Virus record (IMG/VR): IMGVR_UViG_3300007513_000001
Coordinates: 186,001-250,000 of that record
Direction: 5' to 3' (one strand)
Length of the DNA stretch: 64,000 bases
Positions 29,759 to 52,662 of this stretch are shown piece after piece. Positions within the stretch are counted from its first letter, which is position 1, and every line of letters starts with the position of its first letter. The position numbers and the translations under genes are program-made. Under the pieces are notes generated by a model that ran no database searches, was not told where the DNA came from, and saw only the letters and a program-made list of their open reading frames with translations.

Positions 29759-30464
29759 ATCAATAGAGCTTTATGGAGACGGCATTGGCTCTGTAGATTA
29801 TGTCGACCACATGGGTTCCGATCTTACTATTGTCAACAGCGCTCGCGTATCATTTGGCAAGCAAAAAATGACAATGGATAAAAGAGATGAAAAACTTATT
29901 AAGTACCTTATGGAACACAAGCACACCTCAACGATGGAACACAATATTGTTACGTTTCGTTTTACTGTTCCTCTTTACGTTAGGTCTCAGCATCATCGTC
30001 ATAGAACTTGGTCCTATAATGAGATCTCTCGCAGATACACGGATGTAGATATTAGATTTTATGAACCAAAATCTTTTAGAACTCAGCATGAATCAAATCG
30101 ACAAGCGTCTAATACAAAAGAATTAATCAATCCAGAGTTAAATTTGGGCGGCGGCAAATATAAGATGACAGCTGCGGAGGCATCAATCGGACTTCGAAAT
30201 ACTTCACTAGAACTTTTTAATTTATTGATTGAATCTGGTGTTTGCCGAGAACAAGCCAGAGGAATACTCCCGCAAAACATGTACACAGAATACTATGGTA
30301 CTGTCGATCTAAATAATTTGCTTAAATTTGTTGAGCTTAGAACGCATGATGGTGCTCAGTGGGAAATTCAAAAAGTCGCTGAAGCTTGTTTAGATATTGC
30401 TGAAACTCTGTGGCCAATTACTATTAATTGTTACAGAGAAACTAGGGGCAAAACTCATGAATGA
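29748..30464 (+). CDS. thyX: Flavin-dependent thymidylate synthase
   Basis: RHRTWSYNEISRRY signature, ARVSF, EQAR..LP and AQWEI. Start at ATG 29748 with GAGG SD. Confidence 0.95.
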   Translation: MENKSIELYGDGIGSVDYVDHMGSDLTIVNSARVSFGKQKMTMDKRDEKLIKYLMEHKHTSTMEHNIVTFRFTVPLYVRSQHHRHRTWSYNEISRRYTDVDIRFYEPKSFRTQHESNRQASNTKELINPELNLGGGKYKMTAAEASIGLRNTSLELFNLLIESGVCREQARGILPQNMYTEYYGTVDLNNLLKFVELRTHDGAQWEIQKVAEACLDIAETLWPITINCYRETRGKTHE

Positions 30465-38600: not shown

Positions 38601-39265
38601 TTTTGGAAAAACGCCCTTACAAATCGCTTGAAGATATGTTTTGGAGTGAAGATGGAACTTGGAAGCATGCTAAATTCAACAAGAGAGCTATAGAGTCCTT
38701 GATAAAAATTAGAGCTTTTGACTCCCTAGAGTGCGTCGGCCCAGACAAAGATTTTAAGAGTTATGCGCATATGCACTCTGTTGTTATAGAAAACTTTAAC
38801 GAGCTTAGAAAACGTACTAAGAAAGATCCTTATCGTGGAAAAAATAATTTCTTTAAAATTCTTGTAGAGAGCTCTGAAATTTCTGAGTGGTCTTTCGACG
38901 CAATGATGAATTTTGAACAAGAGCTTTTGGGAACCATTAATGTAGAAGCTCTTTTACCAGAAAAATTTGTAAAAAGAATGAATGACAAAAATATTCTTTC
39001 TTTAGATGAACATTGTGGTAGAGAGTTTTACTGGTTTGTTTTAACAAAAGCAATCCCCAAACTCACAAAAAACAAGAAGCCGTACTTACTCTTGAACGGC
39101 ATAGCTTCAACAGGAAAATCTCATAGAATGTTTTGCTGGGGAGTGCCCAAAGATGCTGATTTAGATCCTTTTACTTTTTGCATCGCAGAAGTAGATAAAA
39201 ATGATTTCGGAATGTCTACGAAGTGGAACAGGATCAAAAAATTTAGCTTTAATGATCTTTCTTAA
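35666..39265 (+). CDS. dnaE: DNA polymerase III alpha subunit (family C)
   Basis: PHP motifs HSH..FS..DG, TDHG, GCE, CDSHY; also GPGRGSGAGSLV, FERF, PDIDTD, RHAGG, KFDLLGL and GYGFNKSHA. Confidence 0.96.
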   Translation: MKVPSKFFGLHSHSGFSIFDGLGYPQEHIDFCRENGLDGWSLTDHGHMNGFAHAYLHTEKLNKAGGNFKLIPGCEMYVHPDLDVWKLDYEINKMAKKGDKEALDILKKQREAIQTPLLAFVDEHDETLDVGLEGASLTVENEEETKSGKFYDPIKRRHHLVVLPKTSEGLQRLFHLISRGYTEGFYRFPRVDYKMLKEAAKGGHLMVSTACIGGPLAYDVFQPLQETNFEDLIPSLFDDESLRNKILSKFEYSYDQLADAVGEENVMLELQFNKLPAQHLVNRAILEFARTRSLTDQLVVTCDSHYASPEHWKERELYKKLGWLNYKSFNPDNLPKSKDDLKCELYPKNAQQVWESYLETSAEHDFYNSDEIFEAIERTHDVAHEMIGEIHPDRKMKLPSYVVPEGVTANKALLEASKEGLVKRGLANKPEYVERMKTELKVIFDKNFSEYFLTMKAIIDLAREKMLAGPGRGSGAGSLVNYALYITDIDPVEYGLLFERFMSPERTEMPDIDTDIADRDELIKILRSNFGNKNVIPISNYNTFKIKSLLKDVSRFYGIEFSEVNKTLASLEREVAQGRKADGVDAAFDISFEEAKKYSTKVRDYLEKYPQIADPINVLYKQNKALGRHAGGVIVSEKIEERMPLIVARGEMQTPWVEGMNYKHLEEFGWIKFDLLGLETLRIIERTISLVLEKSGIENPSFEQIVEWYNSHIAPNVIDFNDQKVYENVYHSGRWAGIFQCTQRGAQALFKRAKPVGLVDLATLTSIYRPGPLSAKVDKLYIKAKNNPENVFYGHPLIEQVLNSTYGMIIFQEQVMELCHVVAGFPKAECNKLRKMMKPVGSGNENIKKAAALKNKFVEGASKNGVEKNIASELYDRILYFSGYGFNKSHAVSYAVNSYHCAWFMTYFEQEWIQAYLEACSGNPKKLSKALSEVKALGYKIVPIDINKAGKAWTCIDDNSLMPSFLSCKGVGAAAVEEILEKRPYKSLEDMFWSEDGTWKHAKFNKRAIESLIKIRAFDSLECVGPDKDFKSYAHMHSVVIENFNELRKRTKKDPYRGKNNFFKILVESSEISEWSFDAMMNFEQELLGTINVEALLPEKFVKRMNDKNILSLDEHCGREFYWFVLTKAIPKLTKNKKPYLLLNGIASTGKSHRMFCWGVPKDADLDPFTFCIAEVDKNDFGMSTKWNRIKKFSFNDLS

Positions 39266-39294
39266 TTGTAAAAATCACAAACTCGGAGTAGAAT
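39266..39294 (+). promoter_or_regulatory. Sigma70-like promoter heading the base-modification operon
   Basis: TTGTAA-N17-TAGAAT; ATG lies 6 nt downstream. Confidence 0.65.
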
Positions 39295-39300
39295 AATCTT

Positions 39301-40146
39301 ATGGTTGAAAACTATATAAATTTAAATCAAGCGTTTGTTGAAGAATTAGTAGACCTCAAATTTAACGGTGAAGAAGTTAAGTCGAGAGGATTCACGCAAA
39401 AAGAAAAATTGTTTTGCTCTTTCATTATAAAAGATCCAACAGATCTAAAGATCAAAGTGCCCGCCCGCAAGTTTAATGAAGATTACGCTGTTTTAGAGTG
39501 GCTTTGGTATCTTACTTCCAATTGCGAAGTAAGCAATATTGGGAAGTTTGCTGATATATGGAATAAAATAGCTGATGAAGATAATTTAGTTGAATCAAAT
39601 TATGGAAGTTATATAAAGCCTGCTTGGTATGATTTAGTAAACGAGCTTCTTAACGATAGAGATACAAGAAGAGCTACTTGCGTAATTAACCAACCTCACC
39701 ATCGATGGAAAAATCCTAACGACTACCCCTGCACTCATTATATTCATTTTTTTATTAGAGGAGATGCTCTTCACTTGGGAGTTTACATGAGATCTAACGA
39801 TGCAGTTTTTGGTTTTTGCAATGACGTTTTTACTTTTGCGTTGTTTCAACAGCTTATGTTAAACGAACTAAATTCTCGTGGTGCTAATTTAAAGCTAGGC
39901 AATTATTACCATTCAGCTGGAAGCTTTCATGTTTATGATCGACATTACGAAATGCTAGAAAAAATCTCAAAAAACTACTTTAAGAAAGCTAGAAAAGAAG
40001 GGTATCCCACATTTGAAAAAATGACTTTAAATCCAGATTTAACTTGGCCAAAAATGGAAAAATTTATATCTTTTTTTGAAGAAAACCTAGACAAAGACGA
40101 AATATCGAGTAAGATTAAAGAGATTAGGGAGATTATCTTTCAATGA
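39301..40146 (+). CDS. Thymidylate-synthase-fold dNMP-modifying enzyme, dCMP hydroxymethylase-like
   Basis: TRRA, catalytic YPCT, MRSNDAVFGFCND and SFHVY. Has Asp at the position of E. coli ThyA Asn177. Confidence 0.85.
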   Translation: MVENYINLNQAFVEELVDLKFNGEEVKSRGFTQKEKLFCSFIIKDPTDLKIKVPARKFNEDYAVLEWLWYLTSNCEVSNIGKFADIWNKIADEDNLVESNYGSYIKPAWYDLVNELLNDRDTRRATCVINQPHHRWKNPNDYPCTHYIHFFIRGDALHLGVYMRSNDAVFGFCNDVFTFALFQQLMLNELNSRGANLKLGNYYHSAGSFHVYDRHYEMLEKISKNYFKKARKEGYPTFEKMTLNPDLTWPKMEKFISFFEENLDKDEISSKIKEIREIIFQ

Positions 40147-40424
40147 ATATTCTTGACGAAGCTAACAAAATTATTAACGAAAGATCTGAAGAAAAAGAAA
40201 GACAATATGGCCCGATGGGCGAAGGCTTAGAGCGCGCTGCAATGATTGCTTCTGGGATGACTGGAAAAGATTTTACTGCCGACGATATTTTTGCTGCTTT
40301 AGTAGCTCTTAAGTTTTCGAGGCACTCATACAATTATAAAGAAGATAATTTTTTAGATGCCGCAGCTTATCTGGGCGCGTGGAATAACTACATTCAAAAG
40401 GGTTTGAAAAATGAAAATAAGTAA
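40143..40424 (+). CDS. Small all-alpha protein (DUF6378 / NTP-pyrophosphohydrolase-like)
   Basis: IL.EA..II..R....YG and LK.SR.......D...D...Y pattern. Confidence 0.6.
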   Translation: MNILDEANKIINERSEEKERQYGPMGEGLERAAMIASGMTGKDFTADDIFAALVALKFSRHSYNYKEDNFLDAAAYLGAWNNYIQKGLKNENK

Positions 40425-40845
40425 AGTAAGAAGTGTTAAAACTCCAACTCGAGGAACTCCTGAATCTGCAGGCATAGATTTTTATGTTCCGCAAGGAATG
40501 GTTGTTAGCTTACCTCCGGGTTATTCTTGTTTGATGCCAAGCGGAATAAAGGCTAATGTTCCAGCAGGCCATGCTTTAATTGCATTTAACAAGAGTGGCG
40601 TAGCTGTAAAAAAGAATCTCCACGTCGGCGCATGCGTTGTTGATGAAGATTATCAAGGAGAGATCCATATTAACTTGATCAATGTTGGCAGAGAAACAGT
40701 GAAAATTTCTTCTGGAGAAAAAATTATACAATTTGTTTTACTTCCAGTATTTTATGACACAATTGAAGAAGTAGAACTAGAAAATCTTTATGAACAACAA
40801 ACCCAGCGCGGCGAAGGCGGATTTGGAAGTACGGGAGTTGAGTGA
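40411..40845 (+). CDS. dut: Trimeric dUTPase
   Basis: SAGIDF, KSG, VDEDYQGEI, IIQFV and RGEGGFGSTG. Confidence 0.93.
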   Translation: MKISKVRSVKTPTRGTPESAGIDFYVPQGMVVSLPPGYSCLMPSGIKANVPAGHALIAFNKSGVAVKKNLHVGACVVDEDYQGEIHINLINVGRETVKISSGEKIIQFVLLPVFYDTIEEVELENLYEQQTQRGEGGFGSTGVE

Positions 40846-41900
40846 TGAATTATTTTGTAGATTATGAATTACCAAAAAGTTGCAAAATCGGTATTGATGG
40901 ATTAGAGCGCAATATTCCAACTCGTAAACATAGTCACAACGCGGCTTGGGTTCATTTGTATAAAAACATGCTTCAATCTGCCGGCTGGGAAGACGTTCAC
41001 GTCTTGGGAAATCATGATACTTACGAAGGCTATGAAGCCATGATTTTTTATCCTGGAATTGCTTATTCGGGAGCCATTAATTTCTTTTTTGGAGTGGATG
41101 ATAATGTCGTTAGAAGATTTTCTAGAGTTCAAGACTTTGAAGGCCCGACATTTATTTTAAATCATGAAATGCCCCTTATCGGAAACACGATCAAAGGAAG
41201 ACTTCATAATAAATCTACTAGTAGTCGAGTTGGAAACCTTAAGCTAGACTTGTTAGACGATATCTGCAAGTCTACTCGTAGAATCGACTATGTAGAAAGA
41301 TCGAAAAAACTTTGTTTTGGAGACAGCCACTGCTTCTCAACTTATGCCCCCGGGTATTCTGTTTGTCGAAACGATGGTCTTACACTTTTTTCTACTTTAC
41401 GAAATGGAGTGAAGCAAACCATTGAAGAAAAATCGGGTATGATGACTAAAGATTTAACTCATCTTACGTTTTATATGGGTAATATTGATATTCGACATCA
41501 CCTCATGAGACAAGAAAACCCTTTTGAAAAAGCCCATGCAATGGGAATAGAATTGGGATACCAGCTTAAATCTTTAGGCATTCCAAACATAGAAATTGTT
41601 CACGTTCTTCCAATTGAAAATATTTCTCGAAAACTTCCAAAAACTGGCTACTATAAGAAGACTCCATATTTTGGAACTTGGGAAGAAAGAACCAAACTAG
41701 TCAATACATTTAACAACGCTGTGGATAAAATTTGTATAGAAAACAAATGGAATACTTTCCATTGGCCCGAAGAGTTTTTAAATGATTCTAAAGAGTTGGA
41801 TTTTGAATATATGGAGCGTCCAAAAAGTGTTCATTTAAGCCCAGTTTCTTATAGGTGGGATCTTTTTGAAAATAAATTAAATAGCTTGCATAGTAGCTAA
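40842..41900 (+). CDS. Conserved phage protein with an SGNH/GDSL-like C-terminal domain
   Basis: FGDSH (block I), G..L (block II), YMGNIDIRHH (block III) and SVHL (block V). Confidence 0.55.
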   Translation: MMNYFVDYELPKSCKIGIDGLERNIPTRKHSHNAAWVHLYKNMLQSAGWEDVHVLGNHDTYEGYEAMIFYPGIAYSGAINFFFGVDDNVVRRFSRVQDFEGPTFILNHEMPLIGNTIKGRLHNKSTSSRVGNLKLDLLDDICKSTRRIDYVERSKKLCFGDSHCFSTYAPGYSVCRNDGLTLFSTLRNGVKQTIEEKSGMMTKDLTHLTFYMGNIDIRHHLMRQENPFEKAHAMGIELGYQLKSLGIPNIEIVHVLPIENISRKLPKTGYYKKTPYFGTWEERTKLVNTFNNAVDKICIENKWNTFHWPEEFLNDSKELDFEYMERPKSVHLSPVSYRWDLFENKLNSLHSS

Positions 41901-41914
41901 AAATGGAGAAAAAT

Positions 41915-43105
41915 ATGCCAAAAAATAAATCAATTCGAGTTGCAATTGTCGGTGTCGGAAATTGCGCTAATTCTTTCTATCAAGGATTAACATATTATGC
42001 TGGATACACCGAAGGCCAAGAGCGCGACGGCGTTATGAAGAGCCGAATCGGAGGATATTCAGTAGCTGACCTCGATGTTGTAGCTGCGTTTGATATAGAC
42101 AAAAGAAAAGTCGGCAAGTGTTTTAGAGAAGCTATGTGGGCTAAACCAAACTGTACTCCAGAATATGAACCTAATGTTCCCGATGGTCCAATAGTTCAGA
42201 TGGGCCCAGTGTTAGATGGGGTACCGTCTTTGATGAAATCTTATCCAGACGATGAAGCTTTTAGACCAGCTGATTTAGAGCCCGTAGATGTGGCTCAGAT
42301 ATTAACAGACTTAAAGGTGGATATTCTAATCAACTATCTACCAGTGGGTTCTCAGAAGGCTACTGAGTGGTATGCAGAACAGTGTCTAAAGACGGGAGTT
42401 TCTCTTCTTAACTGTATTCCAGTCTTTATTGCTTCTAATCCAATTTGGGAACAGAAGTTTATTGATGCTGGAATTCCTTTGGTTGGGGACGATATGAAAT
42501 CTCAGTTTGGGGCGTCTATTTTATCTCAAATGCTGCAAGAATTAGCTTTCGCCCGAGGACTAAATGTGAATGCTCATATTCAGCGTAATGTTGGTGGAAA
42601 TACTGATTTCTTGAATATGGTCGATCAATCTAGGTTAAAGTATAAAAAGGTTTCTAAGGAAAATGTAATTCGATCTCAGCATGTTATCAGGGGAGTTGAT
42701 CCAGAAGAATCATTCTTACATGCTGGCCCTTCAGAATATATTCGTTTTTATGGAGATAACAAGGTTGCCAATTTTAGAGTAGAGATGGAAGGTTTCCTCG
42801 GCGCACCAGTAATTCTAGACGCGCAACTTTCCGTAATCGACTCTCCAAACTCTGGTGGAGTTGTTATCGACGCGGCTCGATATCTAAAGGTTGCGAGAGA
42901 AATGGGGATTGTTGGAGCTTTGCGTGGGCCATCTGCCTTTACGCAAAAAACCCCGCCCCAACAATTAATGTTTTCAGAAACTCTTTACGAATGCGACGCT
43001 CTTTCAGAGAGAAAGCTTACTAGATTTACAAAGAGGCAAACTCAAAATTACAGTGCGGAAGAGTTGTATCAATCTTGCCCAGCAGGAAACAAGGAAGTAG
43101 ATTAA
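41915..43105 (+). CDS. ino1: Myo-inositol-1-phosphate synthase (bacterial/archaeal type)
   Basis: VAIVGVGNCA, AFDID.RKVG, NYLPVGS, GDD.KSQ.GA, NVGGNTDFLNM, YGDNK and DSPNSGGVVIDA. Confidence 0.95.
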   Translation: MPKNKSIRVAIVGVGNCANSFYQGLTYYAGYTEGQERDGVMKSRIGGYSVADLDVVAAFDIDKRKVGKCFREAMWAKPNCTPEYEPNVPDGPIVQMGPVLDGVPSLMKSYPDDEAFRPADLEPVDVAQILTDLKVDILINYLPVGSQKATEWYAEQCLKTGVSLLNCIPVFIASNPIWEQKFIDAGIPLVGDDMKSQFGASILSQMLQELAFARGLNVNAHIQRNVGGNTDFLNMVDQSRLKYKKVSKENVIRSQHVIRGVDPEESFLHAGPSEYIRFYGDNKVANFRVEMEGFLGAPVILDAQLSVIDSPNSGGVVIDAARYLKVAREMGIVGALRGPSAFTQKTPPQQLMFSETLYECDALSERKLTRFTKRQTQNYSAEELYQSCPAGNKEVD

Positions 43106-43106
43106 A

Positions 43107-43823
43107 ATGCCGAAAATCCACGAGCAAAAAGGGAAATTATTTAATCCTGAAGCTGGAAATTTTGAAGAATGCATTATTAAACTAAACCCTCGTAATAACT
43201 TTTGGTATCGTCCTGGCACTTTTGATCTTAATTCTATTAGAGAGTGCCGAGACAACTATAGTGAAATAGACACTTGCGGAAAAGTTGTTCTAGATCTGGG
43301 TGCCAATATTGGCGGTTTTGCTCGGATGGCTCTTCAAAAGGGCGCGAAACAAGTTATTGCTCTAGAGCCGTGCCCATATAATTTTCAACTGCTAGAGATT
43401 AATGCTGAAAATGCTGAAAACATAAATGCAGCAGTTTCAGAAGAAGATACTGATAGCGTTGTTTTTCATTATGCTAGTTCTAAAAGAAATTCTGTTTCTT
43501 CTTCTACGGTTCGACGCAGAAACGCTTCGGGAACCACTATTTCAGTCCCAGGCCTTTCTTTTGGAGGGCTATTAGAGAAATATAAGCCTGAAATTCTTAA
43601 AATTGATATCGAAGGAAAAGAGTATGATATTTTAGATTCGATTAAAGAGATACCAGATTTTGTAGAAGTTGTTGGTATTGAATTTCACAATACTCGAAAA
43701 CCATATTCGGAATATCCTTCTCGTTTTTTTCCAGAATCTACTTGGAAAAAAGTAGAGCACCCTATTTTGATGTACGGACAGAAAAAGGTTTTAGATTACA
43801 CATTTTATCGCAAAGTTGTTTAG
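43107..43823 (+). CDS. FkbM-family SAM-dependent (O-)methyltransferase
   Basis: VLDLGANIG, ALEP...NF..L..N and LKIDIEG.EY....EFH. Confidence 0.88.
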   Translation: MPKIHEQKGKLFNPEAGNFEECIIKLNPRNNFWYRPGTFDLNSIRECRDNYSEIDTCGKVVLDLGANIGGFARMALQKGAKQVIALEPCPYNFQLLEINAENAENINAAVSEEDTDSVVFHYASSKRNSVSSSTVRRRNASGTTISVPGLSFGGLLEKYKPEILKIDIEGKEYDILDSIKEIPDFVEVVGIEFHNTRKPYSEYPSRFFPESTWKKVEHPILMYGQKKVLDYTFYRKVV

Positions 43824-43832
43824 GAGAAAATA

Positions 43833-44249
43833 ATGGTTGTTAATGGTTTTGATATTGACGGAGTGATTCACCTTGGAGATAGTGTCTGTGGAATCCGCCC
43901 TGGTCCTGGTGATGTGATTATTACCGGTCGAAGTTTTGAGGAAGAGGCCGAAACTCTAGCTTTTCTTCGTCGTAATGGAATTAATAATCCAGTATTTTTT
44001 AACCAGTGTCATTATGATGAAAAAACTCGTGAAGGTTCTGGTTGGCACAAAGGCGAAACTATTAAGTTGTTGCATCGAGCTGGCCTCAGCATTCGATATT
44101 TTTTCGAAGACGATGAAGTTCAAAAAGCCGAAATTGAAAGAATTTTAGCAGAAAAAGAAATCTGGAATATGCCAACCAAAGTAATTCACGTTAACAATCC
44201 ACATGTAGCGAAAGAGAATAGACGTCACTTAGAGGATTTACATGAGTAA
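43833..44249 (+). CDS. Capless HAD phosphatase
   Basis: GFDIDGVI, IITGRS, HK and FFEDD. Confidence 0.85.
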   Translation: MVVNGFDIDGVIHLGDSVCGIRPGPGDVIITGRSFEEEAETLAFLRRNGINNPVFFNQCHYDEKTREGSGWHKGETIKLLHRAGLSIRYFFEDDEVQKAEIERILAEKEIWNMPTKVIHVNNPHVAKENRRHLEDLHE

Positions 44250-45687
44250 TTCTGAGCTTCTTAAAATGACTGATAAGCAGCTTTTTGATGAAATTCCCTC
44301 TCATAAAAAGCAAGATTTTATAGACTTTATAAAAGAGCTTAATCGAAGAGAGTATTTAGTTAGATTTGCAAAATCGTGCACCTTTGAAAGCTTTCAGCAT
44401 TTACCTGGTACTTCTTTTAAATTTGGTAATGGTTTTATCGTAAATGGAAAATCAGTCCCTTATTTCCACCCCAATCGTAGCTTTCATGATGAAATTATTT
44501 GGTTGAATGAAAATCTTTTCTACAACCCTCATGCTACTTTTGAAGACAAGCTCATCAACGCAGCGATTGTAAAGTTTTATGGGCCATCTAACACTTTGAA
44601 GCTTATTGCTAGCGGAACAGGAAAGAATTTTGTAGATTATAAACGATTCATAGGAGACGCTAAGTATCTTCAACAAGTTTGTGTAAATTTGGAAACAGCT
44701 GTGAAAAATAAAGAGAAGATATACGGAACCACAGAACTAAGAACAAGCCTACAAACTGCTGCTCGAAACTACGCAAGAGACGTTGGTTCTCCAATAGATA
44801 AACTTGAATTAATTCCGTTGGTAGATAGAAAAGTTAGATCATGTCGACCTTCTGATATTCTTTTTTGGTTTACTAAGATCGGTCCAGATTTTGTAAATTT
44901 TTATAAGAAGACTCCAAACATGGAAGAGTCTTTCAAGTTTTTAAATTCTTTTAGAGGGATTGGAAATTATTATGGTTATCATTTTAGTTGCAATCTTGCT
45001 CGTATGCCCTCCGTTGGAAATTTAATATTCAAGGGTACCCCTGGCAAAATCGATGAAGATGATGAATATGTTGTTCCGGGTGTTGGAGCGATGTCTGCGA
45101 TAAATTGGTTTTATGAACACCGCGGCCACTCTATAAACACAAAAGTTGGAAAAAAATTAATAAACGCTATTCGCGAACACCAAAATGATTTCTTCGATTT
45201 AAAGAAATCTGACAATTCTAAATTTTATATGGAAAAAGTTTCTGAGCTTGGGTATTTTACTAATTTCGGCTGTGAAATATCTTGCTGCCAGTTCGGAGTT
45301 TATCGAAGATTAAGAGAAGATAAAAAATTAGCTTTAAGAAGAGCAGCTGCACCAATTTCAAAAGAGGAAGTCAAAATGATTCTTACGCCAAAAACCCTAA
45401 TGCAAAAACTGGGTCTTATTTCAGAAGATAAGCCTTCTGAAGAACACATCCAAACCACCAATCCCGCTTTAGATTTTTCTTCTACAAGCAAAGAAGATTT
45501 AATTCTTGCTATTGTCGATGAATCTGGAGGAGCTTGTTCACATTCTGCAGTGGCAAAAATGATAGAAGAAAAGGGATATACTCAATATAAACAGTCTGGA
45601 AGCTGGAAAGAAAGCTGGGTAATAATGAGAGAATTAGTTAAAAAGGGTGCTCTAGTTAAAGATGGAAAATTTTATCGGAGGTCGTAA
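44242..45687 (+). CDS. aGPT-Pplase / amino acid:DNA transferase-like protein (HhH glycosylase fold) with a C-terminal wHTH-like tail
   Basis: GIGNYYGYH...NL (HhH), VVPGVGA..AI and EISCCQF..Y, matching the family G.G.f.a / GpGa / E...Ce..ky pattern. Confidence 0.65.
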   Translation: MSNSELLKMTDKQLFDEIPSHKKQDFIDFIKELNRREYLVRFAKSCTFESFQHLPGTSFKFGNGFIVNGKSVPYFHPNRSFHDEIIWLNENLFYNPHATFEDKLINAAIVKFYGPSNTLKLIASGTGKNFVDYKRFIGDAKYLQQVCVNLETAVKNKEKIYGTTELRTSLQTAARNYARDVGSPIDKLELIPLVDRKVRSCRPSDILFWFTKIGPDFVNFYKKTPNMEESFKFLNSFRGIGNYYGYHFSCNLARMPSVGNLIFKGTPGKIDEDDEYVVPGVGAMSAINWFYEHRGHSINTKVGKKLINAIREHQNDFFDLKKSDNSKFYMEKVSELGYFTNFGCEISCCQFGVYRRLREDKKLALRRAAAPISKEEVKMILTPKTLMQKLGLISEDKPSEEHIQTTNPALDFSSTSKEDLILAIVDESGGACSHSAVAKMIEEKGYTQYKQSGSWKESWVIMRELVKKGALVKDGKFYRRS

Positions 45688-46865
45688 TGCAAAACGTGAG
45701 GTGGGGAACTATCATTCCCCTTATTGGGGGTAGCGCTATAGGGTGCTCTCAAGCCACTAAAAATAAGCCAGAATTTCATCTTAGTTATTCTGCTTTTGGC
45801 GCTAACGAAAAGTATTTAACCGATTATTGGAAAGACGTACCTCGTATAGTTTTAGATGAAGGTGGAGAAATCCCAAATCAGCAAATTGATTTTATCAACT
45901 CAGTTTGTCCATGCGCGGGTTTAAGTCAGCTTAATACTTCTAGAAGCAAAGATATGCGTGAATCTAAAAATTACTGGATGTACGAATCCGCTCAAAGGAT
46001 AATGGGAGAACTTAAACCGAGAGTTTACTGGGGAGAAAATGCTCCCGGCCTTTTTACTAATTCGGGTGCGTACGTACGTGACAAGCTTAAAACCCTGGCC
46101 AAAGAACATGGTTATTCCTTTTCTCTTTATAAAACTGATACTCAAAAACATGGAATACCACAGCGAAGAGTAAGAACTTTTTATTTTTTTTGGAGAGATA
46201 CTAATCCGCCTATTTTAAATTATTTTGATCAAACTCCTGTCCCTTTTGCAGAGTACATCAAAGAGATACCAGATACAGCAACTTTACAAGATCAGTTTAA
46301 TATTGCGGGAAAAATTTCTGACAATTTTGATTCTTACGCTTTCGTTCTTCAGAAGTTGAAAATAACCCACAGAGAATTCGTGAAATCTAATGATTCCGGG
46401 TCTATTCATTCAATTTTTTCTTACCTTGCTGAAAATGAACTTTTAAAAGAGTGCATAGACTGGATAGAAAAAAACAAAAATGAAGAAACAGCTGAACACA
46501 GAAGATTGAAAGCTATTTATAAAAAAGTTCAATCTGGTGGGAGATTTATGGATGCTTCTCCGGGGTATTATTATGCTAGAACTAACGCTATAGTGGGAAG
46601 GACTTTAACGCATTTAGTTCACCCCACTGAAGATCGCGGCATGTCTATTCGAGAGCTGCTTCATATGATGGGGCTGCCTCATGACTTTGAAATGAGCGAT
46701 AGAAAATCCTTGAATGTAATAGCGCAGAACGTTCCTACGTGTACAGCCCGAGATATGGCTACTCAAGTTATTGAATACTTAAACGGTGGTTTACAAATTG
46801 CAGAAAACAGTTTTTTAATGCAAAATAACTTAAAACAGGAGACCACGTTATGCGAGCCCTTGTAA
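45687..46865 (+). CDS. DNA cytosine-C5 methyltransferase-fold protein with an atypical motif I
   Basis: Motif IV CPCAGLS, VI ENAP, VIII PQRRVR, IX R.MS.RE...MGLP and X AQNVP. Motif I reads IPLIGG instead of FxGxGG. Confidence 0.85.
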   Translation: MQNVRWGTIIPLIGGSAIGCSQATKNKPEFHLSYSAFGANEKYLTDYWKDVPRIVLDEGGEIPNQQIDFINSVCPCAGLSQLNTSRSKDMRESKNYWMYESAQRIMGELKPRVYWGENAPGLFTNSGAYVRDKLKTLAKEHGYSFSLYKTDTQKHGIPQRRVRTFYFFWRDTNPPILNYFDQTPVPFAEYIKEIPDTATLQDQFNIAGKISDNFDSYAFVLQKLKITHREFVKSNDSGSIHSIFSYLAENELLKECIDWIEKNKNEETAEHRRLKAIYKKVQSGGRFMDASPGYYYARTNAIVGRTLTHLVHPTEDRGMSIRELLHMMGLPHDFEMSDRKSLNVIAQNVPTCTARDMATQVIEYLNGGLQIAENSFLMQNNLKQETTLCEPL

Positions 46866-47836
46866 CTGGAGGTTGCGGATTTATTGGATCATGCATCTCT
46901 AAAAAATTAGTAGATTCAGGATGGGATGTTGAGATAGTTGACGATATGTCTAATGGGAATTATGAGTTTTTAGATGGCTATCGCATAAGATCAGTTCCGG
47001 TTCAGCTTGGTGAAAGTTTTGAAAACCAAGTCAAAAAGCAAGAACATCAAATTTTAGTTTTGGTTGGAGATTTTACTAGCTACGAAGTCGTTAGAAGAAT
47101 TGTGGAAAAAAAATATGATGTAATATTTCATTGCGCAGCCAATCCACGCGTAGAATACTCAGTTCAAAACCCTGTTGAAACAACAGACGAAAATCTAACT
47201 AAAACAATTAAGCTTTTTACTCACTCTATTGGAAACGTCAAAAGGATAGTGTTTTCCTCTAGTTGTTCAATATACGGTGATCCGTGGACTCTTCCTACTA
47301 CAGAATCTCACGGAAAAAATCCAAATAGTCCATACGCGCTTCAAAAGCTTTGTGTCGAAGAGTTTGCGCGACTGTATTCTAAAACTTATGATTTAGACAT
47401 AGCTTGTTTGCGATACTTCAATGTTTATGGCCCTTATCAATATGGAGGGTCTCCATATTCTACAGCTATCGTATCTTGGTGTGACAAAGTAAAAAATGGT
47501 TTACCGCTTCGCAGTGATGGTGATGGAACGCAGTCTAGAGATATGGTTTTTGTAGAAGACGTTGCGAGAGCAAATATTTTAGCTGCGACTCATAAAGAAA
47601 ACTTTAGTGGAAAATGCATTAATATTGGAACTGGAGCTTCTTATACTAATAATCAAATTTTAGATATTTTTAAGTCTAAGTTTCCCGACATAGAAATTAG
47701 TCATGCACCAGAAAGATCCGGAGACGTAAAACACACTCAGGCATGCACAAAAGAAGCAAGGAATTTTTTAGGATTCAGAACTGAATATTCTTTAGAAGAA
47801 GGTCTAGAAAAAACTTTTGACTGGTGGGAGATTTGA
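46850..47836 (+). CDS. NAD-dependent NDP-sugar epimerase/dehydratase
   Basis: GGCGFIG, FSSS...YG, YALQK, LRYFNVYGP and GDG.Q.RD. Confidence 0.92.
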   Translation: MRALVTGGCGFIGSCISKKLVDSGWDVEIVDDMSNGNYEFLDGYRIRSVPVQLGESFENQVKKQEHQILVLVGDFTSYEVVRRIVEKKYDVIFHCAANPRVEYSVQNPVETTDENLTKTIKLFTHSIGNVKRIVFSSSCSIYGDPWTLPTTESHGKNPNSPYALQKLCVEEFARLYSKTYDLDIACLRYFNVYGPYQYGGSPYSTAIVSWCDKVKNGLPLRSDGDGTQSRDMVFVEDVARANILAATHKENFSGKCINIGTGASYTNNQILDIFKSKFPDIEISHAPERSGDVKHTQACTKEARNFLGFRTEYSLEEGLEKTFDWWEI

Positions 47837-48393
47837 TGAAAAATGAATTTGTTATGTTTGTCGGACCCATGTTTGGTGGGAAAACTACTAAACTTTTAAG
47901 CGCGATAGACAGATATCGATATCAAGGTAGAGACATTCATGTGTTTAAACCGATAGTAGATGAAAGATATTCTAAGGAAGAAATAGTAACCCATTGGGGA
48001 ACTAAAATTCCAGCTACTAGAATCACCTCTCCAGTTAGCAGCCTTCATCCAGTATTTGAGCCTTTCTATCACCTTAAAGAATCTTGCGTTTTAGCAGTAG
48101 ATGAAGCTTTTATGTTAGAGGGAGTTGGAAAAGTTTTGGTCGACCTGTTTAGAAGAGGCCACACAGTGCTTGTTTCTTCTCTTCAGCTTTCTTCTGATTT
48201 TACTCCATATAAAGAGCTTCAAACCATGCTTCCGTACGCTACAAAAGTAGAAGTTTGTCCGGCAGTATGCTCTACGTGCGGCGCAGACGCGCACTATACT
48301 AAAAAGGTTGGCGGTCGTTCTGATCACGCAATCGAGGTAGGGGGATCAGAGATGTATCAGCCTAAGTGTTTAGAGCATTTTTATTTGGGATAA
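47836..48393 (+). CDS. tdk: Thymidine kinase
   Basis: GPMFGGKTT, D.RY, VDEA, C..CG and Y.P.C..H. TGATG coupling to the preceding gene. Confidence 0.9.
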   Translation: MKNEFVMFVGPMFGGKTTKLLSAIDRYRYQGRDIHVFKPIVDERYSKEEIVTHWGTKIPATRITSPVSSLHPVFEPFYHLKESCVLAVDEAFMLEGVGKVLVDLFRRGHTVLVSSLQLSSDFTPYKELQTMLPYATKVEVCPAVCSTCGADAHYTKKVGGRSDHAIEVGGSEMYQPKCLEHFYLG

Positions 48394-48428: not shown

Positions 48429-48869
48429 TTGAAGGATATTTTAACATTGTCAGACAAACACCACAAATCATCTTGGAAGTCTAGATCTTCTCTTGCTGTT
48501 ACCCCATGGGGATCTGAGATCCGATGGGCTGCAACTGCCGGAGTAAATGGAAAATGCCTCAGCATTAACAAGGGCATGAGAACAAGCTTAAAATACTATA
48601 AGTTAAAAGACGAAGTTCTTTTTCTTTACAAGGGGAAGATTTTAGTAACTCACGGAGATGAAAAAACTATAACGCATCCAGAAACACATCCATATGTTCA
48701 ATCTATTCTTGCGCCTGGAGAAATGGTAATAGTGCAGAGCCATTGCCCTTACAGGATTGAAGCTTTAGAAGATTCTGAAGTTATTGAAATAGGCTCTCGA
48801 GGTCCAGGCGACACAGTCATGCTGGAGGATGATTTCGGGAGAGCAGATAAAGCAGATAAGGAGCTTTAA
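48429..48869 (+). CDS. Cupin (mannose-6-phosphate-isomerase type II C-terminal-like); start uncertain
   Basis: PWG.E, TSL..Y..K.E, RI.A.EDS...E and EDDFGR. Confidence 0.7.
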   Translation: MKDILTLSDKHHKSSWKSRSSLAVTPWGSEIRWAATAGVNGKCLSINKGMRTSLKYYKLKDEVLFLYKGKILVTHGDEKTITHPETHPYVQSILAPGEMVIVQSHCPYRIEALEDSEVIEIGSRGPGDTVMLEDDFGRADKADKEL

Positions 48870-49775
48870 ATGACAGTAACTGACCCATCTTCAGTCAATG
48901 TAGTGATATATCACGCAGACTGCACTGACGGATTCGGAGCTGCATACGCAGCTTGGAAACTACTTGGAAATAGAGCTGAATATCATGCATGTAAACATGG
49001 TAAACCACCGCCAGACGTAAAAGGAAAAGTTGTTGCTATTTTAGATTTTTCTTATGACAATGCTACAACTAAACGAATGATAGAAGACGCGGAAGGGCTG
49101 ATCATCATCGATCATCATAAGTCAGCAGTCGTAGAATTGCACGATATCAGTAATGCTATTTTTGATATGGCTCATTCTGGAACAGTTCTTTCTTGGAACT
49201 TTTTTCACCCGGGAAAAGAATCTCCTAAGTTTTTGACTTATATTGAAGATCGCGATCTTTGGAAGTGGGAACTCCCATATTCAAAAGAATTTAGTGCAGC
49301 ATTTGATATGGTTCCATTTGAATTCGAGGAATTTGAAAAATTTGAAGACGATTCTGTATTCGATGACGCTGTAAAACGAGGTTCTTACATTTTGGCGTAT
49401 TCAAAAACTGTTGTAAAGAAAGTTTGTGAAAAAGCTGAGCCGAGAAAGTTTGAAGGTAAGGATGTACTAGTCGTCAATGCGTCTCACTGGATGTCAGAGA
49501 TTGGAGCTCGTCTTTCTCCAGACTGCGATTTTGCGATGATCTGGTATTGGGATCACGTTGCGCAGCACACTAAAGTTTCTCTAAGAGCTTTTCATGAAAC
49601 TGTGGACGTTTCTGAAATTTCTAAAAAGTTCGGTGGCGGCGGCCACAAAAAAGCAGCTGGATTTCAGCTTTCCAAAAGTAAGCATGTTGAAGATTTATTT
49701 GATAAGCCGAAAACAACTAGAAAAAAATCTACTAAATCTTCAGCTAAAACTGTAAAGAAAACGGAGACTTCTTGA
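48870..49775 (+). CDS. DHH/DHHA1 phosphoesterase
   Basis: YH.DC.DG, DHH, EDRDLW, SLR and GGGGH..AAG. Confidence 0.9.
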   Translation: MTVTDPSSVNVVIYHADCTDGFGAAYAAWKLLGNRAEYHACKHGKPPPDVKGKVVAILDFSYDNATTKRMIEDAEGLIIIDHHKSAVVELHDISNAIFDMAHSGTVLSWNFFHPGKESPKFLTYIEDRDLWKWELPYSKEFSAAFDMVPFEFEEFEKFEDDSVFDDAVKRGSYILAYSKTVVKKVCEKAEPRKFEGKDVLVVNASHWMSEIGARLSPDCDFAMIWYWDHVAQHTKVSLRAFHETVDVSEISKKFGGGGHKKAAGFQLSKSKHVEDLFDKPKTTRKKSTKSSAKTVKKTETS

Positions 49776-50173
49776 GACCGTCGTGGGATAAAATATGGAT
49801 GGATTTCGCAAGCTCAATCGCTGAGAGATCTTACGACCCAAGATTTCAAGTGGGCGCTGTTATTATTACTGAAGACAACAGCCAAGTTTTAGCTGTTGGA
49901 TATAACGGAAATTACGCTGGAGGTCCCAATGAAGTAGAATCAGAAACCCCTGGGGAATCTGGCATGCTTCATGCTGAAATTAATGCATTACTTAAAATGG
50001 ATTACAACAACCCTAAAAAGAAAAAGCTTTATCTAACTCTTTCTCCTTGTAGAATGTGCGCAAAGGCTATAATTAATAGCGGAATTAATGAAGTAGTTTA
50101 TGCTGAATCTTATAGGGACCTATCGGGGATAGAACTTTTAAAAGAATGTGGCATATCTGTAAGACACGTTTGA
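49772..50173 (+). CDS. dCMP deaminase
   Basis: VGAVI, GYNG, HAE.NA and SPC.MC. Confidence 0.92.
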   Translation: MRPSWDKIWMDFASSIAERSYDPRFQVGAVIITEDNSQVLAVGYNGNYAGGPNEVESETPGESGMLHAEINALLKMDYNNPKKKKLYLTLSPCRMCAKAIINSGINEVVYAESYRDLSGIELLKECGISVRHV

Positions 50174-51621: not shown

Positions 51622-51979
51622 TAAATTAGCTAATCGTCTCTTGCACGCAAGATATAAACAGCGGCTTCTTGAAGCGATATCAGAGGTAGATGTTGTAGAC
51701 GATCAAGGAAATATTATTATTGCTAAAGACTTAAAAGTTCGCCATAAAGATTCTGGTTACGAATATACGGTAGACGATGTAGTTGATGACGCCGGCGCAA
51801 TTAGTGTAGTTTTAAGAGAACCTTCAGAGCCCAGGTTTGAGCCGGCTGGCTCCGAAGCGCTATTGGGCTCTCCGCCAAACCAACAGCTTGATCTAAACGA
51901 AGACGACGCTGCCGAAGAAGAAGAGGTAGTTTTTATAGTAGACCAGGCAGAATTTGAAAAGGAGTACGAAGTCAAATGA
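51611..51979 (+). CDS. Hypothetical acidic protein
   Basis: Overlapping operon gene. Confidence 0.6.
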   Translation: MKIDKLANRLLHARYKQRLLEAISEVDVVDDQGNIIIAKDLKVRHKDSGYEYTVDDVVDDAGAISVVLREPSEPRFEPAGSEALLGSPPNQQLDLNEDDAAEEEEVVFIVDQAEFEKEYEVK

Positions 51980-52662
51980 GCAATTTAGAAAGAGATATAA
52001 AAAATCAAATTATTTCTGATTTGGGATTAGAAAATAGAGAGCTCTCTGAAGCTTATGTGACTCAAGCGAAGCAGTTTGAATTGAACACTGAATTATTGAG
52101 TTCGAAAACTAAGAAAGTTCAGCAAGAGATGATGAATGGTTATGTTGAAACTCTTAATCACGTTGCTGCTTCACTAGATACTGCCGCAGAAGACAACGCT
52201 AATTCAGATTCTTCAAAGTTCAGATCTTTAAAAATAGACGAAGTTTACAACATGAATGGTGCGTTTTTGTTCGGAATGCACTTTGAAAATATATCGGACC
52301 CTCAATCTAAAATAATGGTAGATTCTTTGACATTTATGCGCTTAGAGAGAGACTTTGGGACTTTTGATGAGTGGCAAAAAGATTTCATCGGTTGCGCCCT
52401 ATCATCTCGCTCGGGCTGGGTAGTGACAGTTTATAACGGGTTTTTAAATCGGTACATGAATGTCTGCATTGATTCTAACGATATTAGTGTACCACTCAAT
52501 TGTTATCCCCTTATAGTATTAAGCATGCACCCAGAGTCTTACGTGAGGGATTATCTGGGGGATAAGAAAGCCTATGTTTATGCGATGATGCAAGAATTTA
52601 AGTGGGACGTAGTAGAATCTAGATTCAAAAAATCTGATAAAATCAGCAAGGTGCTTAAATGA
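51976..52662 (+). CDS. Fe/Mn superoxide-dismutase homologue lacking metal ligands
   Basis: YV..LN, RDFGTFDEW..DF, GW, PL.VL, Y..DY...K..Y and W..V..RF are present, but the His/Asp ligands are replaced. Confidence 0.8.
   Translation: MSNLERDIKNQIISDLGLENRELSEAYVTQAKQFELNTELLSSKTKKVQQEMMNGYVETLNHVAASLDTAAEDNANSDSSKFRSLKIDEVYNMNGAFLFGMHFENISDPQSKIMVDSLTFMRLERDFGTFDEWQKDFIGCALSSRSGWVVTVYNGFLNRYMNVCIDSNDISVPLNCYPLIVLSMHPESYVRDYLGDKKAYVYAMMQEFKWDVVESRFKKSDKISKVLK

Follow-up and report, generated by a model that had tools for sequence, protein, structure and literature searches.

A candidate phage gene module for inositol-linked modification of hydroxymethylcytosine DNA

Why would a phage carry its own inositol phosphate synthase among genes for nucleotide and DNA modification? 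We addressed this question for a 293-kb marine phage (IMG/VR record IMGVR_UViG_3300007513_000001), using a window of 64,000 nucleotides that spans positions 186,001 to 250,000 of that record. An earlier note, based on the sequence alone, had described a promoter-like element and 11 overlapping or near-abutting genes directly after dnaE. It proposed that they make inositol, its phosphate or its O-methyl ether and attach it to a C5-modified cytosine as protection against restriction and CRISPR. The gene arrangement described there is confirmed by our analysis, whereas the proposed function is only partly supported. The features are as follows (window coordinates).

29802..30416 (+), ThyX flavin-dependent thymidylate synthase, at genome 215802-216416, a dTMP supply independent of g1
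39266..39294 (+), promoter-like hexamer pair (TTGTAA-17-TAGAAT)
39301..40146 (+), g1, thymidylate-synthase (TS)-fold candidate dCMP 5-hydroxymethylase
40143..40424 (+), g2, DUF6378 protein
40411..40845 (+), g3, trimeric dUTPase-family enzyme (possible dUTPase/dCTPase)
40842..41900 (+), g4, two-domain protein with an unassigned N-terminal alpha/beta domain (1-150) and a predicted SGNH-fold C-terminal domain (154-352) carrying an invariant GDSH motif
41903..43105 (+), g5, myo-inositol-1-phosphate (inositol-3-phosphate) synthase homologue, Ino1
43107..43823 (+), g6, FkbM-family (O-)methyltransferase
43833..44249 (+), g7, small HAD-type phosphatase candidate
44242..45687 (+), g8, HMUDK_hel/AADT-superfamily helical domain, putatively DNA-base-modifying (about 22-379), plus a predicted C-terminal winged helix (about 410-481)
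45687..46865 (+), g9, atypical cytosine-5 DNA methyltransferase homologue
46850..47836 (+), g10, extended-SDR nucleotide-sugar epimerase/dehydratase homologue
47824..48393 (+), g11, thymidine kinase (TK), for nucleotide salvage
49772..50173 (+), dCMP deaminase, presumably supplying dUMP for ThyX

The dnaE gene ends at 39265, and the ten junctions from g1 to g11 are -4, -14, -4, +2, +1, +9, -8, -1, -16 and -13 nt. In contrast, the promoter-like site matches only 9 of 12 positions, and such sites are no more frequent here than in shuffles (34 found against 42.6 expected), which places it at chance level. Co-directional abutting genes continue past TK (cupin, DHH, dCMP deaminase), so the 11 genes cannot be equated with an operon of established limits.

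Nine of the eleven family assignments in the note get a database match over threshold: g1 (PF00303, E 3.6e-16), g2 (PF19905, E 2.7e-11), g3 (PF00692, E 2.5e-25; TIGR00576 over its cut-off), g5 (PF01658, E 7.5e-22), g6 (PF05050 and TIGR01444, both over their cut-offs), g8 (PF18723, E 3.4e-7, over the cut-off), g9 (PF00145, E 3e-19), g10 (PF01370, E 2.8e-48) and g11 (PF00265, E 5.8e-32). ThyX (PF02511, E 1.6e-46) and the dCMP deaminase (PF00383, E 4e-23) were identified in the same way. The SGNH assignment of g4 has no Pfam match and rests on the predicted fold: the model has a pLDDT of 96.7, Foldseek gave E 2e-4 with probability 1.0, and VIA comparison gave Z about 12 to many GDSL esterases and O-acetyltransferases. 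g4 corresponds to the N half of phrog_17781, the Aeromonas phage 31 ORF233c fusion. The HAD assignment of g7 rests on motifs, as no Pfam or PDB match was found: DxDGV, T31, K73 and E92-D93-D94 are invariant in 27 homologues, and a PHROG match links g7 to the PNK phosphatase family (phrog_415, E 4e-7). In g9, motif IV PC, motif VI ENA and motif VIII QRRVR align to M.HhaI, while motif I does not align. The best NCBIfam match of g10 is GalE, below its cut-off.

Which base is the likely target? The best PDB matches of g1 are the CMP hydroxymethylase MilA and T4 gp42. By the criteria of PMC13326640, its equivalents of D143, Cys146, D169 and D177 (E. coli numbering) form the signature of a dCMP hydroxymethylase, indicating cytosine as the target rather than thymine or 5-hydroxycytosine. 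The signature is conserved in all 18 distinct TS homologues recovered from the related loci that we retrieved, and the TS genes of loci L098 and L099 carry the same residues. The genomic context of relatives is consistent with this: Aeromonas phage 31 carries a gp42 dCMP hydroxymethylase, and one module variant (locus L081) includes a T4 beta-glucosyltransferase (BGT) homologue.

The Ino1 homologue matches Mycobacterium tuberculosis Ino1 (1gr0) at E 1.4e-88 over residues 9-355 with the catalytic blocks conserved. However, its TIGR03450 score of 323.6 bits lies below the equivalog cut-off, and the family includes other cyclitol-phosphate synthases (6k96).

To determine whether ino1 is linked to these genes in other phages, a test that the note had set for itself, we examined viral contigs encoding an Ino1 relative, of which there are at least 457. 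The outcome was strongly positive. Among the 80 closest Ino1 loci, and counting only those with enough flanking DNA, g4 lies upstream of Ino1 in 67 of 75 (median distance 105 nt, across distinct phage lineages and gene orders), DUF6378 is present in 65 of 73 (55-87% identity), the HAD gene follows Ino1 in 68 of 73, g8 (class A or B) lies downstream in 40 of 44, and FkbM is present in 27 of 44. The module occurs in many uncultured phages, in both DnaE-type and PolB/T4-like backgrounds. The C5-methyltransferase and the epimerase occur in only 8 of 80 loci each, and TK in 7 of 80. The functional core is therefore smaller than the proposed 11-gene operon: it comprises DUF6378, g4, Ino1, the small HAD phosphatase, FkbM and g8, usually near the TS homologue, whereas g9, g10 and g11 are lineage-specific additions. 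DUF6378, listed in the note without a role, is the most conserved member; elsewhere it is fused to DUF4406.

Fusion proteins reinforce this linkage. g4::g8 occurs in Aeromonas phages 31 and 44RR, FkbM::g8 in a protein designated P0077, and FkbM::g8::g4 in protein P0131, which is encoded directly after Ino1 and HAD, next to a dCMP-type TS. These fusions tie g4, FkbM and g8 into one unit that we infer to act on DNA; Ino1 itself was never seen in the fusion proteins examined. In phage 31, a vSGLT-like sugar/polyol symporter sits where Ino1 and HAD sit here, which fits a free sugar or polyol as the donor.

The note had called g8 aGPT-Pplase-like; its match is in fact to the sister family HMUDK_hel (PF18723). 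The g8 model (pLDDT 90) matches the amino-acid:DNA transferase (AADT) gp46 of PaMx11 (8z2m) with VIA Z 9.5 over 227 residues, the C-terminal region gives winged-helix matches of Z about 10, and the atlas neighbours of g8 are HMUDK_hel and AADT clusters. A Z of 9.5 is, however, within the range that helical bundles can reach by chance, profile-profile similarity to AADT is not significant (E 0.017, probability under 3%), and a Glu-x3-Cys correspondence to gp46 E243/C247 was seen by eye only. The cluster has no 5-HMUDK-type kinase or other obvious activator of the hydroxymethyl group, so the known AADT route of phosphorylation followed by displacement cannot simply be assumed.

We consider it most likely, with a probability of roughly 50%, that the module is a cytosine hypermodification system with a self-supplied cyclitol donor. 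Gene content, residue signatures, folds (predicted in the case of g4 and g8), conserved linkage and fusions are established by our analysis; every enzymatic activity, the attachment of inositol to DNA and the linkage chemistry are inferred, in the absence of any chemical data. In this view, g1 would convert dCMP to 5-hydroxymethyl-dCMP, g3, DUF6378, the dCMP deaminase, ThyX and TK would reshape the pyrimidine pools (ThyX had been invoked for dTMP supply in the note), and the phage replicase would place hmC into DNA. Ino1 would cyclise host glucose-6-phosphate to inositol phosphate, from which g7 would remove the phosphate to give myo-inositol. After replication, g8 would bind DNA, flip out hmC and, together with g4, replace or derivatise the 5-CH2-OH with the cyclitol. 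Our preferred chemistry is a covalent Cys-C6 adduct, loss of an activated leaving group from C7 and attack by an inositol hydroxyl, giving an ether-linked 5-(inosityl-oxymethyl)cytosine, whose cyclitol g6 would then O-methylate on DNA. In this DnaE-type lineage, g9 and g10 may add further tailoring or serve the glycosyltransferases encoded elsewhere in the genome. The product would shield the DNA from restriction and CRISPR nucleases. In agreement with the note, our literature searches found no described inositol-modified DNA base.

A possible but less likely alternative is that g4 and g8 modify hmC with some other group, such as an acyl group, an amino acid or a host sugar, while Ino1 and HAD, with or without FkbM, make a soluble (methyl-)inositol for another purpose, for example as an osmolyte or as an acceptor for a glycan or thiol-type metabolite in the infected marine host. 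Adjacency would then reflect only co-expression with early metabolic genes. In support of this, Ino1 and HAD occur without g4/g8 in Moby (inside a 7-deazaguanine cluster), Cr30 and RP13, Ino1 stands alone in giant-virus-like contigs, Ino1 is absent from the fusions examined, and g4 and g8 occur without Ino1 in Aeromonas phages. In contrast, the close and conserved spacing of g4 and Ino1, the triple fusion directly after Ino1-HAD, the exchange of Ino1 and HAD for an importer next to g4::g8 in phage 31, and the fusion of FkbM, whose known relatives methylate sugar-type hydroxyls, to the putative DNA-binding g8 domain all argue against it.

Slightly more doubtful is a glycosylated hmC made by GT-B glycosyltransferases of the genome, namely its two GT4-conflict enzymes, with g10 supplying the nucleotide sugar, inositol serving as one unit of a larger glycan (for example glycosyl-inositol, as in MshA chemistry) or as a cap, and g4 acting as an O-acyl transferase or esterase on the sugar. 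The note saw no classical DNA glycosyltransferase in the operon, but the genome has at least six glycosyltransferases elsewhere; the two GT4-conflict enzymes at genome 110.9-113.3 kb lie next to a PD-(D/E)XK nuclease, and there is a six-gene glycan cluster. g10 is GalE-like, SGNH enzymes typically act on carbohydrate hydroxyls, and the BGT homologue of L081 lies inside the module. g4 relatives also pair with glycosyltransferase-type partners or contexts without g8, sitting with UDP-Galp mutase in phage 25 and fused to a GT-B-like domain in protein P0184, so the g4 step is not specific to cyclitol transfer. However, these glycosyltransferases lie more than 70 kb from the module, to which any link is only presumed, the epimerase and the BGT homologue occur in only 8 and 3 of 80 loci, respectively, and the conserved core has no glycosyltransferase.

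It is unlikely that there is no modification beyond hmC or 5mC and that the genes are a collection of auxiliary metabolic genes and a methyltransferase: the lack of chemical evidence and the assembly of this DNA from ordinary shotgun metagenomes would be compatible with this, but the fusion of a putative DNA-binding, base-flipping-type domain to FkbM and g4 and the conserved synteny with dCMP-type TS argue against it. A canonical thymidine hypermodification system (5-hmdU, kinase, AADT), as in ViI, M6 and PaMx11, is very unlikely even though the only Pfam match of g8 is the helical domain of 5-hmdU DNA kinase, its nearest solved fold is an AADT and a dUTPase is present, because the TS homologue has Asp rather than Asn at position 177 in every member, ThyX, TK and dCMP deaminase secure normal dTMP, there is no P-loop kinase domain, the GFIVNGKS string in g8 is not conserved, and relatives live in hmC phages.

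The closest described systems are the thymidine hypermodification pathways of phages ViI, M6, PhiW-14, SP10 and PaMx11, in which a TS-type dUMP hydroxymethylase is followed by the 5-HMUDK DNA kinase and then aGPT-Pplase/AADT (PMC5889632, PMC8989533, PMC11472151). As in these pathways, a TS-superfamily enzyme would make a hydroxymethyl pyrimidine nucleotide, a post-replicative step would use a helical, DNA-glycosylase-like domain of the same superfamily, and a free small molecule is probably added, followed by tailoring enzymes acting on DNA. What differs is the inferred base, cytosine rather than uracil (D177), and the lack of a P-loop kinase, whose place in fusions is occupied by the SGNH-fold protein. 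In addition, the donor-supply genes would make a cyclitol rather than an amino acid or polyamine, there is an FkbM methyltransferase instead of PLP or radical-SAM tailoring, and sequence similarity to AADT proper is not significant.

With T-even hmC glucosylation (gp42 dCMP hydroxymethylase with alpha/beta-glucosyltransferases), the module shares the dCMP hydroxymethylase signature, the surrounding pyrimidine-pool genes (dCMP deaminase, TK, dUTPase-type enzyme) and, by inference, the hmC hydroxyl as attachment point; a BGT homologue occurs in L081. However, the phage genome has no BGT/AGT homologue, the module has no Leloir glycosyltransferase, and the donor is probably a free cyclitol rather than a UDP-sugar. 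In the arabinosylated 5-hydroxycytosine systems of RB69 and DLP3 (PMC13326640), a TS homologue likewise makes a modified dCMP and the cluster encodes its own sugar-donor biosynthesis, including a small HAD-type sugar-phosphate phosphatase. Those TS homologues carry D169N and make 5-hydroxy-dCMP, whereas g1 keeps D169, and those systems use GT-B arabinosyltransferases and UDP-arabinose. Finally, in actinobacteria Ino1 supplies precursors of mycothiol and phosphatidylinositol. The phage homologue is about 50% identical to M. tuberculosis Ino1 by eye and is likewise followed by a (here predicted) dephosphorylation step, but it is phage-encoded, scores below the equivalog cut-off and is embedded in a nucleotide/DNA-modification module.

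The window is bases 186001-250000 of a complete virus record of 293,409 bp with direct terminal repeats, a jumbo phage. Near-identical DNA occurs in at least five marine or seawater metagenome samples from two studies, but a megablast search of the whole region against GenBank phages returned no match, and no isolate was found to carry the full module. The observation made in the earlier note holds: all eleven + strand genes are present as described, starting 35 nt after dnaE, with junctions of -4, -14, -4, +2, +1, +9, -8, -1, -16 and -13 nt. Searches against Pfam, PHROGs and NCBIfam confirm the TS fold (g1), DUF6378 (g2), dUTPase (g3), Ino1 (g5), the FkbM methyltransferase (g6), the C5 DNA methyltransferase (g9), the extended-SDR epimerase (g10) and TK (g11). 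The protein that the note had called aGPT-Pplase-like (g8) instead matches the sister family PF18723, the helical domain of 5-hmdU DNA kinase (HMUDK_hel), above its gathering score. The 'SGNH-like' protein (g4) and the 'HAD' protein (g7) have no Pfam match. The note had also proposed a single promoter-like element in front of the genes. This site matches 9 of 12 positions, and such sites are fewer here than in shuffled sequence (34 found against 42.6 expected); a scan for promoters and terminators gave only chance-level results. Because abutting co-directional genes continue beyond TK with a cupin, a DHH phosphoesterase and a dCMP deaminase, the limits of the operon are arbitrary. The features flanking the eleven genes are as follows.

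39266-39294: promoter-like site, matching 9 of 12 positions.
48429-48869, co-directional: cupin-type protein matching phrog_7851 ('cysteine dioxygenase'), conserved after TK in the DnaE lineage; phage Cr30 also encodes an annotated cysteine dioxygenase a few kb from its Ino1.
48870-49775, co-directional: DHH/DHHA1 phosphoesterase with faint NrnA-like (oligoribonuclease/pAp phosphatase) similarity, between the cupin and the dCMP deaminase, conserved at 82-100% identity in the five fetched loci that extend far enough to include it.
51976-52662: ORF with a Fe/Mn superoxide dismutase C-terminal domain (PF02777, E 3e-12), conserved in the related locus L005.

To determine which base is targeted, we examined the diagnostic positions of TS homologues, in E. 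coli numbering, as given in PMC13326640: N177 specifies dUMP and D177 specifies dCMP; L143 gives methyl, whereas an acidic residue at this position, which provides water access, gives hydroxymethyl; and D169N marks the 5-hydroxy-dCMP synthases. The g1 protein has the TS fold (PF00303, E 3.6e-16), and the cysteine in its 'YPCTHY' motif, equivalent to the catalytic C146, aligns to C148 of T4 gp42. Aligned to T4 gp42 and MilA, g1 has D143 ('NDYPC'), D169 ('MRSND') and D177 ('CND'). The same pattern is present in all 18 distinct TS homologues recovered from the fetched related loci, as well as in the TS genes of L098 and L099, two loci in which TS lies next to a fusion protein. By signature, g1 is a dCMP hydroxymethylase, and is neither a dUMP enzyme nor a 5-hydroxycytosine enzyme. 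ThyX, TK and dCMP deaminase cover the supply of dTMP.

Ino1 (g5) matches the myo-inositol-1-phosphate synthase 1gr0 with an E of 1.4e-88 over residues 9-355. The blocks GDDxKSQ, NVGGNxDFLNM, SK and DSPNS are conserved, and there are 92 invariant columns among 7 viral homologues. However, its TIGR03450 score of 323.6 bits is below the equivalog cut-off of 638, a threshold that would exclude other cyclitol-phosphate synthases, and the five-membered-cyclitol-phosphate synthase 6k96 also matches (E 5.8e-48). In g7, all four HAD motifs (D7-x-D9, T31, K73 and E92-D93-D94) are invariant in 27 homologues, but Pfam, NCBIfam and PDB searches, even with a profile, gave no match; the only match is to phrog_415, of PNK-phosphatase type (E 4e-7). 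Apparent HAD fusions in the related loci L050, L062 and L081 proved to be artefacts of ORF extension across a stop codon. The FkbM protein scores above the curated cut-offs of PF05050 (55.2 bits; cut-off 22.7) and TIGR01444 (80.9 bits; cut-off 37.7). In the C5-methyltransferase homologue g9 (PF00145, E 3e-19), motifs IV (CPCAG), VI (GENAP) and VIII (QRRVR) align to M.HhaI. Its N-terminal 56 residues were not aligned by Pfam or phmmer, and the string 'IPLIGGSAIG' is only partly similar to the FxGxG SAM-binding loop of motif I.

Single-sequence and profile searches of the PDB with g4, g7, g8 and DUF6378 gave nothing useful. The AlphaFold model of g4 (pLDDT 96.7) shows a small N-terminal alpha/beta domain and a C-terminal SGNH fold (residues 154-352). 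Foldseek assigns this fold with probability 1.0 (E 2e-4), a VIA structural search gives Z 10-12 to more than 40 SGNH entries, which include GDSL esterases, sialate and xylan esterases and peptidoglycan O-acetyltransferases, and the corresponding AFDB clusters are named SGNH. The family carries a GDSH motif at 160-163, in which D161 and H163 are invariant and S162 is conserved in at least 90%, together with many invariant Arg and His residues. A 'GNID' string at 213-216 and a nearly invariant H331 are candidates, from sequence alone, for block III (GxND) and the block V histidine.

The g8 model (pLDDT 90) is a helical domain followed by a C-terminal winged helix. Foldseek against the PDB returned only the winged helix. 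The wide VIA search matched the helical part to the only solved amino-acid:DNA transferase (AADT), PaMx11 gp46 (8z2m), which has a two-helix-bundle fold, at Z 9.5 over 227 residues with an rmsd of 4.5, a Z value within the range that helical proteins can reach by chance. There is no significant sequence match to the AADT/aGPT-Pplase families PF18724 and PF18746: the only Pfam match is PF18723, hhalign of the g8 family against the gp46 family gives E 0.017 and a probability of 2.7%, comparisons with PaMx11 gp50 and with a 34-member AADT alignment were likewise not significant, and a forced global alignment was meaningless. The hhalign comparison does align g8 'GNYYGYH', with Y243/H247, to the donor-binding 'GPWIGFK' of gp46, which contains Trp146 and Lys150. 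By eye only, the invariant E345-x3-C349 of g8 mirrors E243-x3-C247 of gp46, the metal ligand and proposed C6 nucleophile (PMC11472151), with similar spacing between the motifs. We treat this as a lead rather than a result.

The earlier note had named the linkage of ino1 to these genes in other phages as a test of its proposal, and the outcome is strongly positive. A scan of IMG/VR found at least 457 contigs with an Ino1 relative, of which we fetched the 80 best. The counts below include only loci with enough flanking DNA, and the survey extends only to these 80 closest loci.

Table. Genes near Ino1 in the 80 closest viral Ino1 loci (gene; position relative to Ino1; present in)
g4; just upstream (median gap 105 nt); 67 of 75
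DUF6378; upstream; 65 of 73
HAD; downstream; 68 of 73
g8-type; downstream; 40 of 44
FkbM; downstream; 27 of 44
TS; within the locus (4 kb up, 5 kb down); 10 of 21

The module sits in DnaE-type phages like this one and in PolB/RNR/UvsX T4-like phages, with different gene orders. The C5-MTase, epimerase and TK are confined to the DnaE lineage (7-8 of 80 loci). The module is common, and most of the closest 80 contigs carry the whole of it. Its parts appear to be swapped as cassettes between near-identical phages. Two g8 classes exist, about 25% identical to each other, and both match PF18723. In L019 (11221-14637), from a close relative of this phage (Ino1 92% and dCMP deaminase 88% identical), the cluster has acquired a divergent FkbM (46%), the other g8 class (24%) and an extra 243-aa gene with faint sulfotransferase similarity. 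Another variant, L081 (3353-7019), has a T4 beta-glucosyltransferase (BGT) homologue (PF09198, over the cut-off) between HAD and FkbM and, after g8, a cREC_REC 'cyclic-phosphate processing receiver' protein and a dUTPase_2-like protein; the latter is conserved at 82-100% identity in 21 of the fetched loci. Such swapping, in which FkbM may be present or absent and a sugar importer can replace Ino1, fits an arms race with restriction and CRISPR systems.

Fusion proteins tie several of these components together. In Aeromonas phages 31 and 44RR2.8t, g4::g8 is a single 795-aa protein. P0077 is an FkbM::g8 fusion lying after Ino1-HAD, and P0131 is an FkbM::g8::g4 fusion flanked by Ino1-HAD on one side and, after a 188-aa ORF, by a dCMP-type TS on the other. 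The arrangement 'catalytic domain::HMUDK_hel' parallels 'kinase::HMUDK_hel' in 5-HMUDK, which argues that g4 and FkbM act on DNA presented by g8.

Among cultured relatives, phage 31 has the dCMP hydroxymethylase gp42. Directly upstream of its g4::g8 fusion (ORF233c) and downstream of motA, it carries a Na+/sugar symporter of the SSF family, closest to Vibrio vSGLT (E 9.4e-104 to 2xq2; L004:4286-8266, NC_007022 160183-164163). Transporter genes seem unusual in lytic T4-like phages, and this importer sits where the present phage has Ino1+HAD. In phage 25 (L095:2743-6014, NC_008208), the same motA-proximal locus holds UDP-galactopyranose mutase, an unknown 358-aa protein (phrog_14998) that is not g8-like, and a standalone g4-like protein, suggesting a furanose-based hmC modification cassette. 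In L099 (157-4180), DUF6378 is followed by P0184, in which g4 is fused to a domain with faint GT-B glycosyltransferase similarity, and by a PLP-dependent enzyme, a dCMP-type TS and MazG, another donor variant built on the DUF6378-g4-TS core. So g4 and DUF6378 are common partners of different transferase types. As the cultured Aeromonas phages 31, 44RR2.8t and 25 carry g4/g8 relatives, part of the system is accessible to experiment now.

We propose the following mechanism. hm-dCMP is synthesized and incorporated into DNA, and Ino1 and HAD synthesize inositol. g8 would then flip hmC and, with g4, exchange or derivatize the hydroxymethyl oxygen with the cyclitol, after which FkbM would O-methylate the appended cyclitol on DNA. 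The gene content, residue signatures, predicted folds, conserved linkage and fusions come from the analysis itself, whereas each of these activities, including the attachment of inositol to DNA, is inferred from them without chemical or read-level evidence. The weak point is activation, because neither the cluster nor the conserved module of related loci contains a kinase other than TK. There are two options: g4 could install an ester leaving group, as SGNH acyltransferases do, or a Cys-C6 adduct of hmC could be dehydrated directly, chemistry that C5-methyltransferases show in vitro. The second option may also explain the atypical g9, which keeps PC, ENA and QRRVR but has a poor motif I. The proposal of the earlier note, that the phage makes inositol and attaches it to a C5-modified cytosine, is partly supported. 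We put at roughly one in three (0.35) the probability of the most far-reaching version, in which a widespread family of marine and freshwater phages replaces cytosine by hmC and links to it a phage-made cyclitol (myo-inositol, O-methylated on DNA) through a HMUDK_hel/AADT-superfamily enzyme that acts without a kinase, using an SGNH-fold partner to activate or process the hydroxymethyl group.

Caveats apply to this reading. The final adduct may include sugars, as the genome carries, outside the window, a six-gene cluster of GT2, GT1, a GFO/IDH/MocA oxidoreductase with faint IolG similarity, a DAO-like flavoenzyme, GT4 and GT9 (genome positions 83961-89253) and, separately, a PD-(D/E)XK nuclease followed by two GT4-conflict glycosyltransferases (genome positions 110018-113345); these are possible DNA or virion glycosylation genes. 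Viral Ino1 is also not confined to the DNA-modification module. Ino1+HAD occur without g4/g8 in Cr30, in RP13 and, inside the FolE-QueC-DpdA-QueE cluster, in Stenotrophomonas Menderaviruses; in Stenotrophomonas phage Moby (L001:8210-13624), Ino1 and a g7-like HAD annotated as hypothetical are embedded in the 7-deazaguanine cluster FolE-Ino1-HAD-QueC-DpdA-QueE, which raises the question of whether inositol also feeds a deazaguanine derivative there. Ino1 occurs alone in giant-virus-like contigs: in L032 (4503-17580), probably a giant-virus fragment, an Ino1 of 65% identity stands among a protein kinase, DUF5901 and DUF2828 genes. A thymidine reading is rejected because of D177, a 5-hydroxycytosine reading because D169 is retained, and a kinase reading of g8 because its Walker-A-like string 'GFIVNGKS' is not conserved in the family.

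In the literature searched, we found no inositol- or cyclitol-modified DNA base, no study of DUF6378, and no link between SGNH proteins and the aGPT-Pplase superfamily. Pyrimidine hypermodification itself is known, and the module can be compared with its systems one by one. The 5-hydroxy-dCMP synthases of RB69 and DLP3 carry D169N, whereas g1 and all 18 relatives keep Asp. For T4-type hmC glucosylation, a PF09198 search for BGT found nothing in the 293-kb genome, although its control also gave no hit, and tblastn with the BGT homologue of L081 found nothing in the genome. 5-HMUDK joins an N-terminal P-loop kinase domain to the helical domain; g8 matches only the helical domain (profile positions 57-274), and its N-terminal part is helical in the model. 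AADT enzymes work downstream of 5-HMUDK on a phosphorylated hydroxymethyl base, whereas the cluster and the conserved module have no such kinase. If inositol is indeed attached to DNA, the system would contain the first cyclitol-modified nucleobase, adding cyclitols as a new chemical class to natural DNA modifications, and its enzymes could become tools for hmC-specific DNA labelling. It would also extend the kinase/AADT paradigm from thymine to cytosine with a different activation chemistry, and transfer by the kinase-free g8-type enzyme with an SGNH-fold partner, if it takes place, would be a new route of post-replicative group transfer to DNA.
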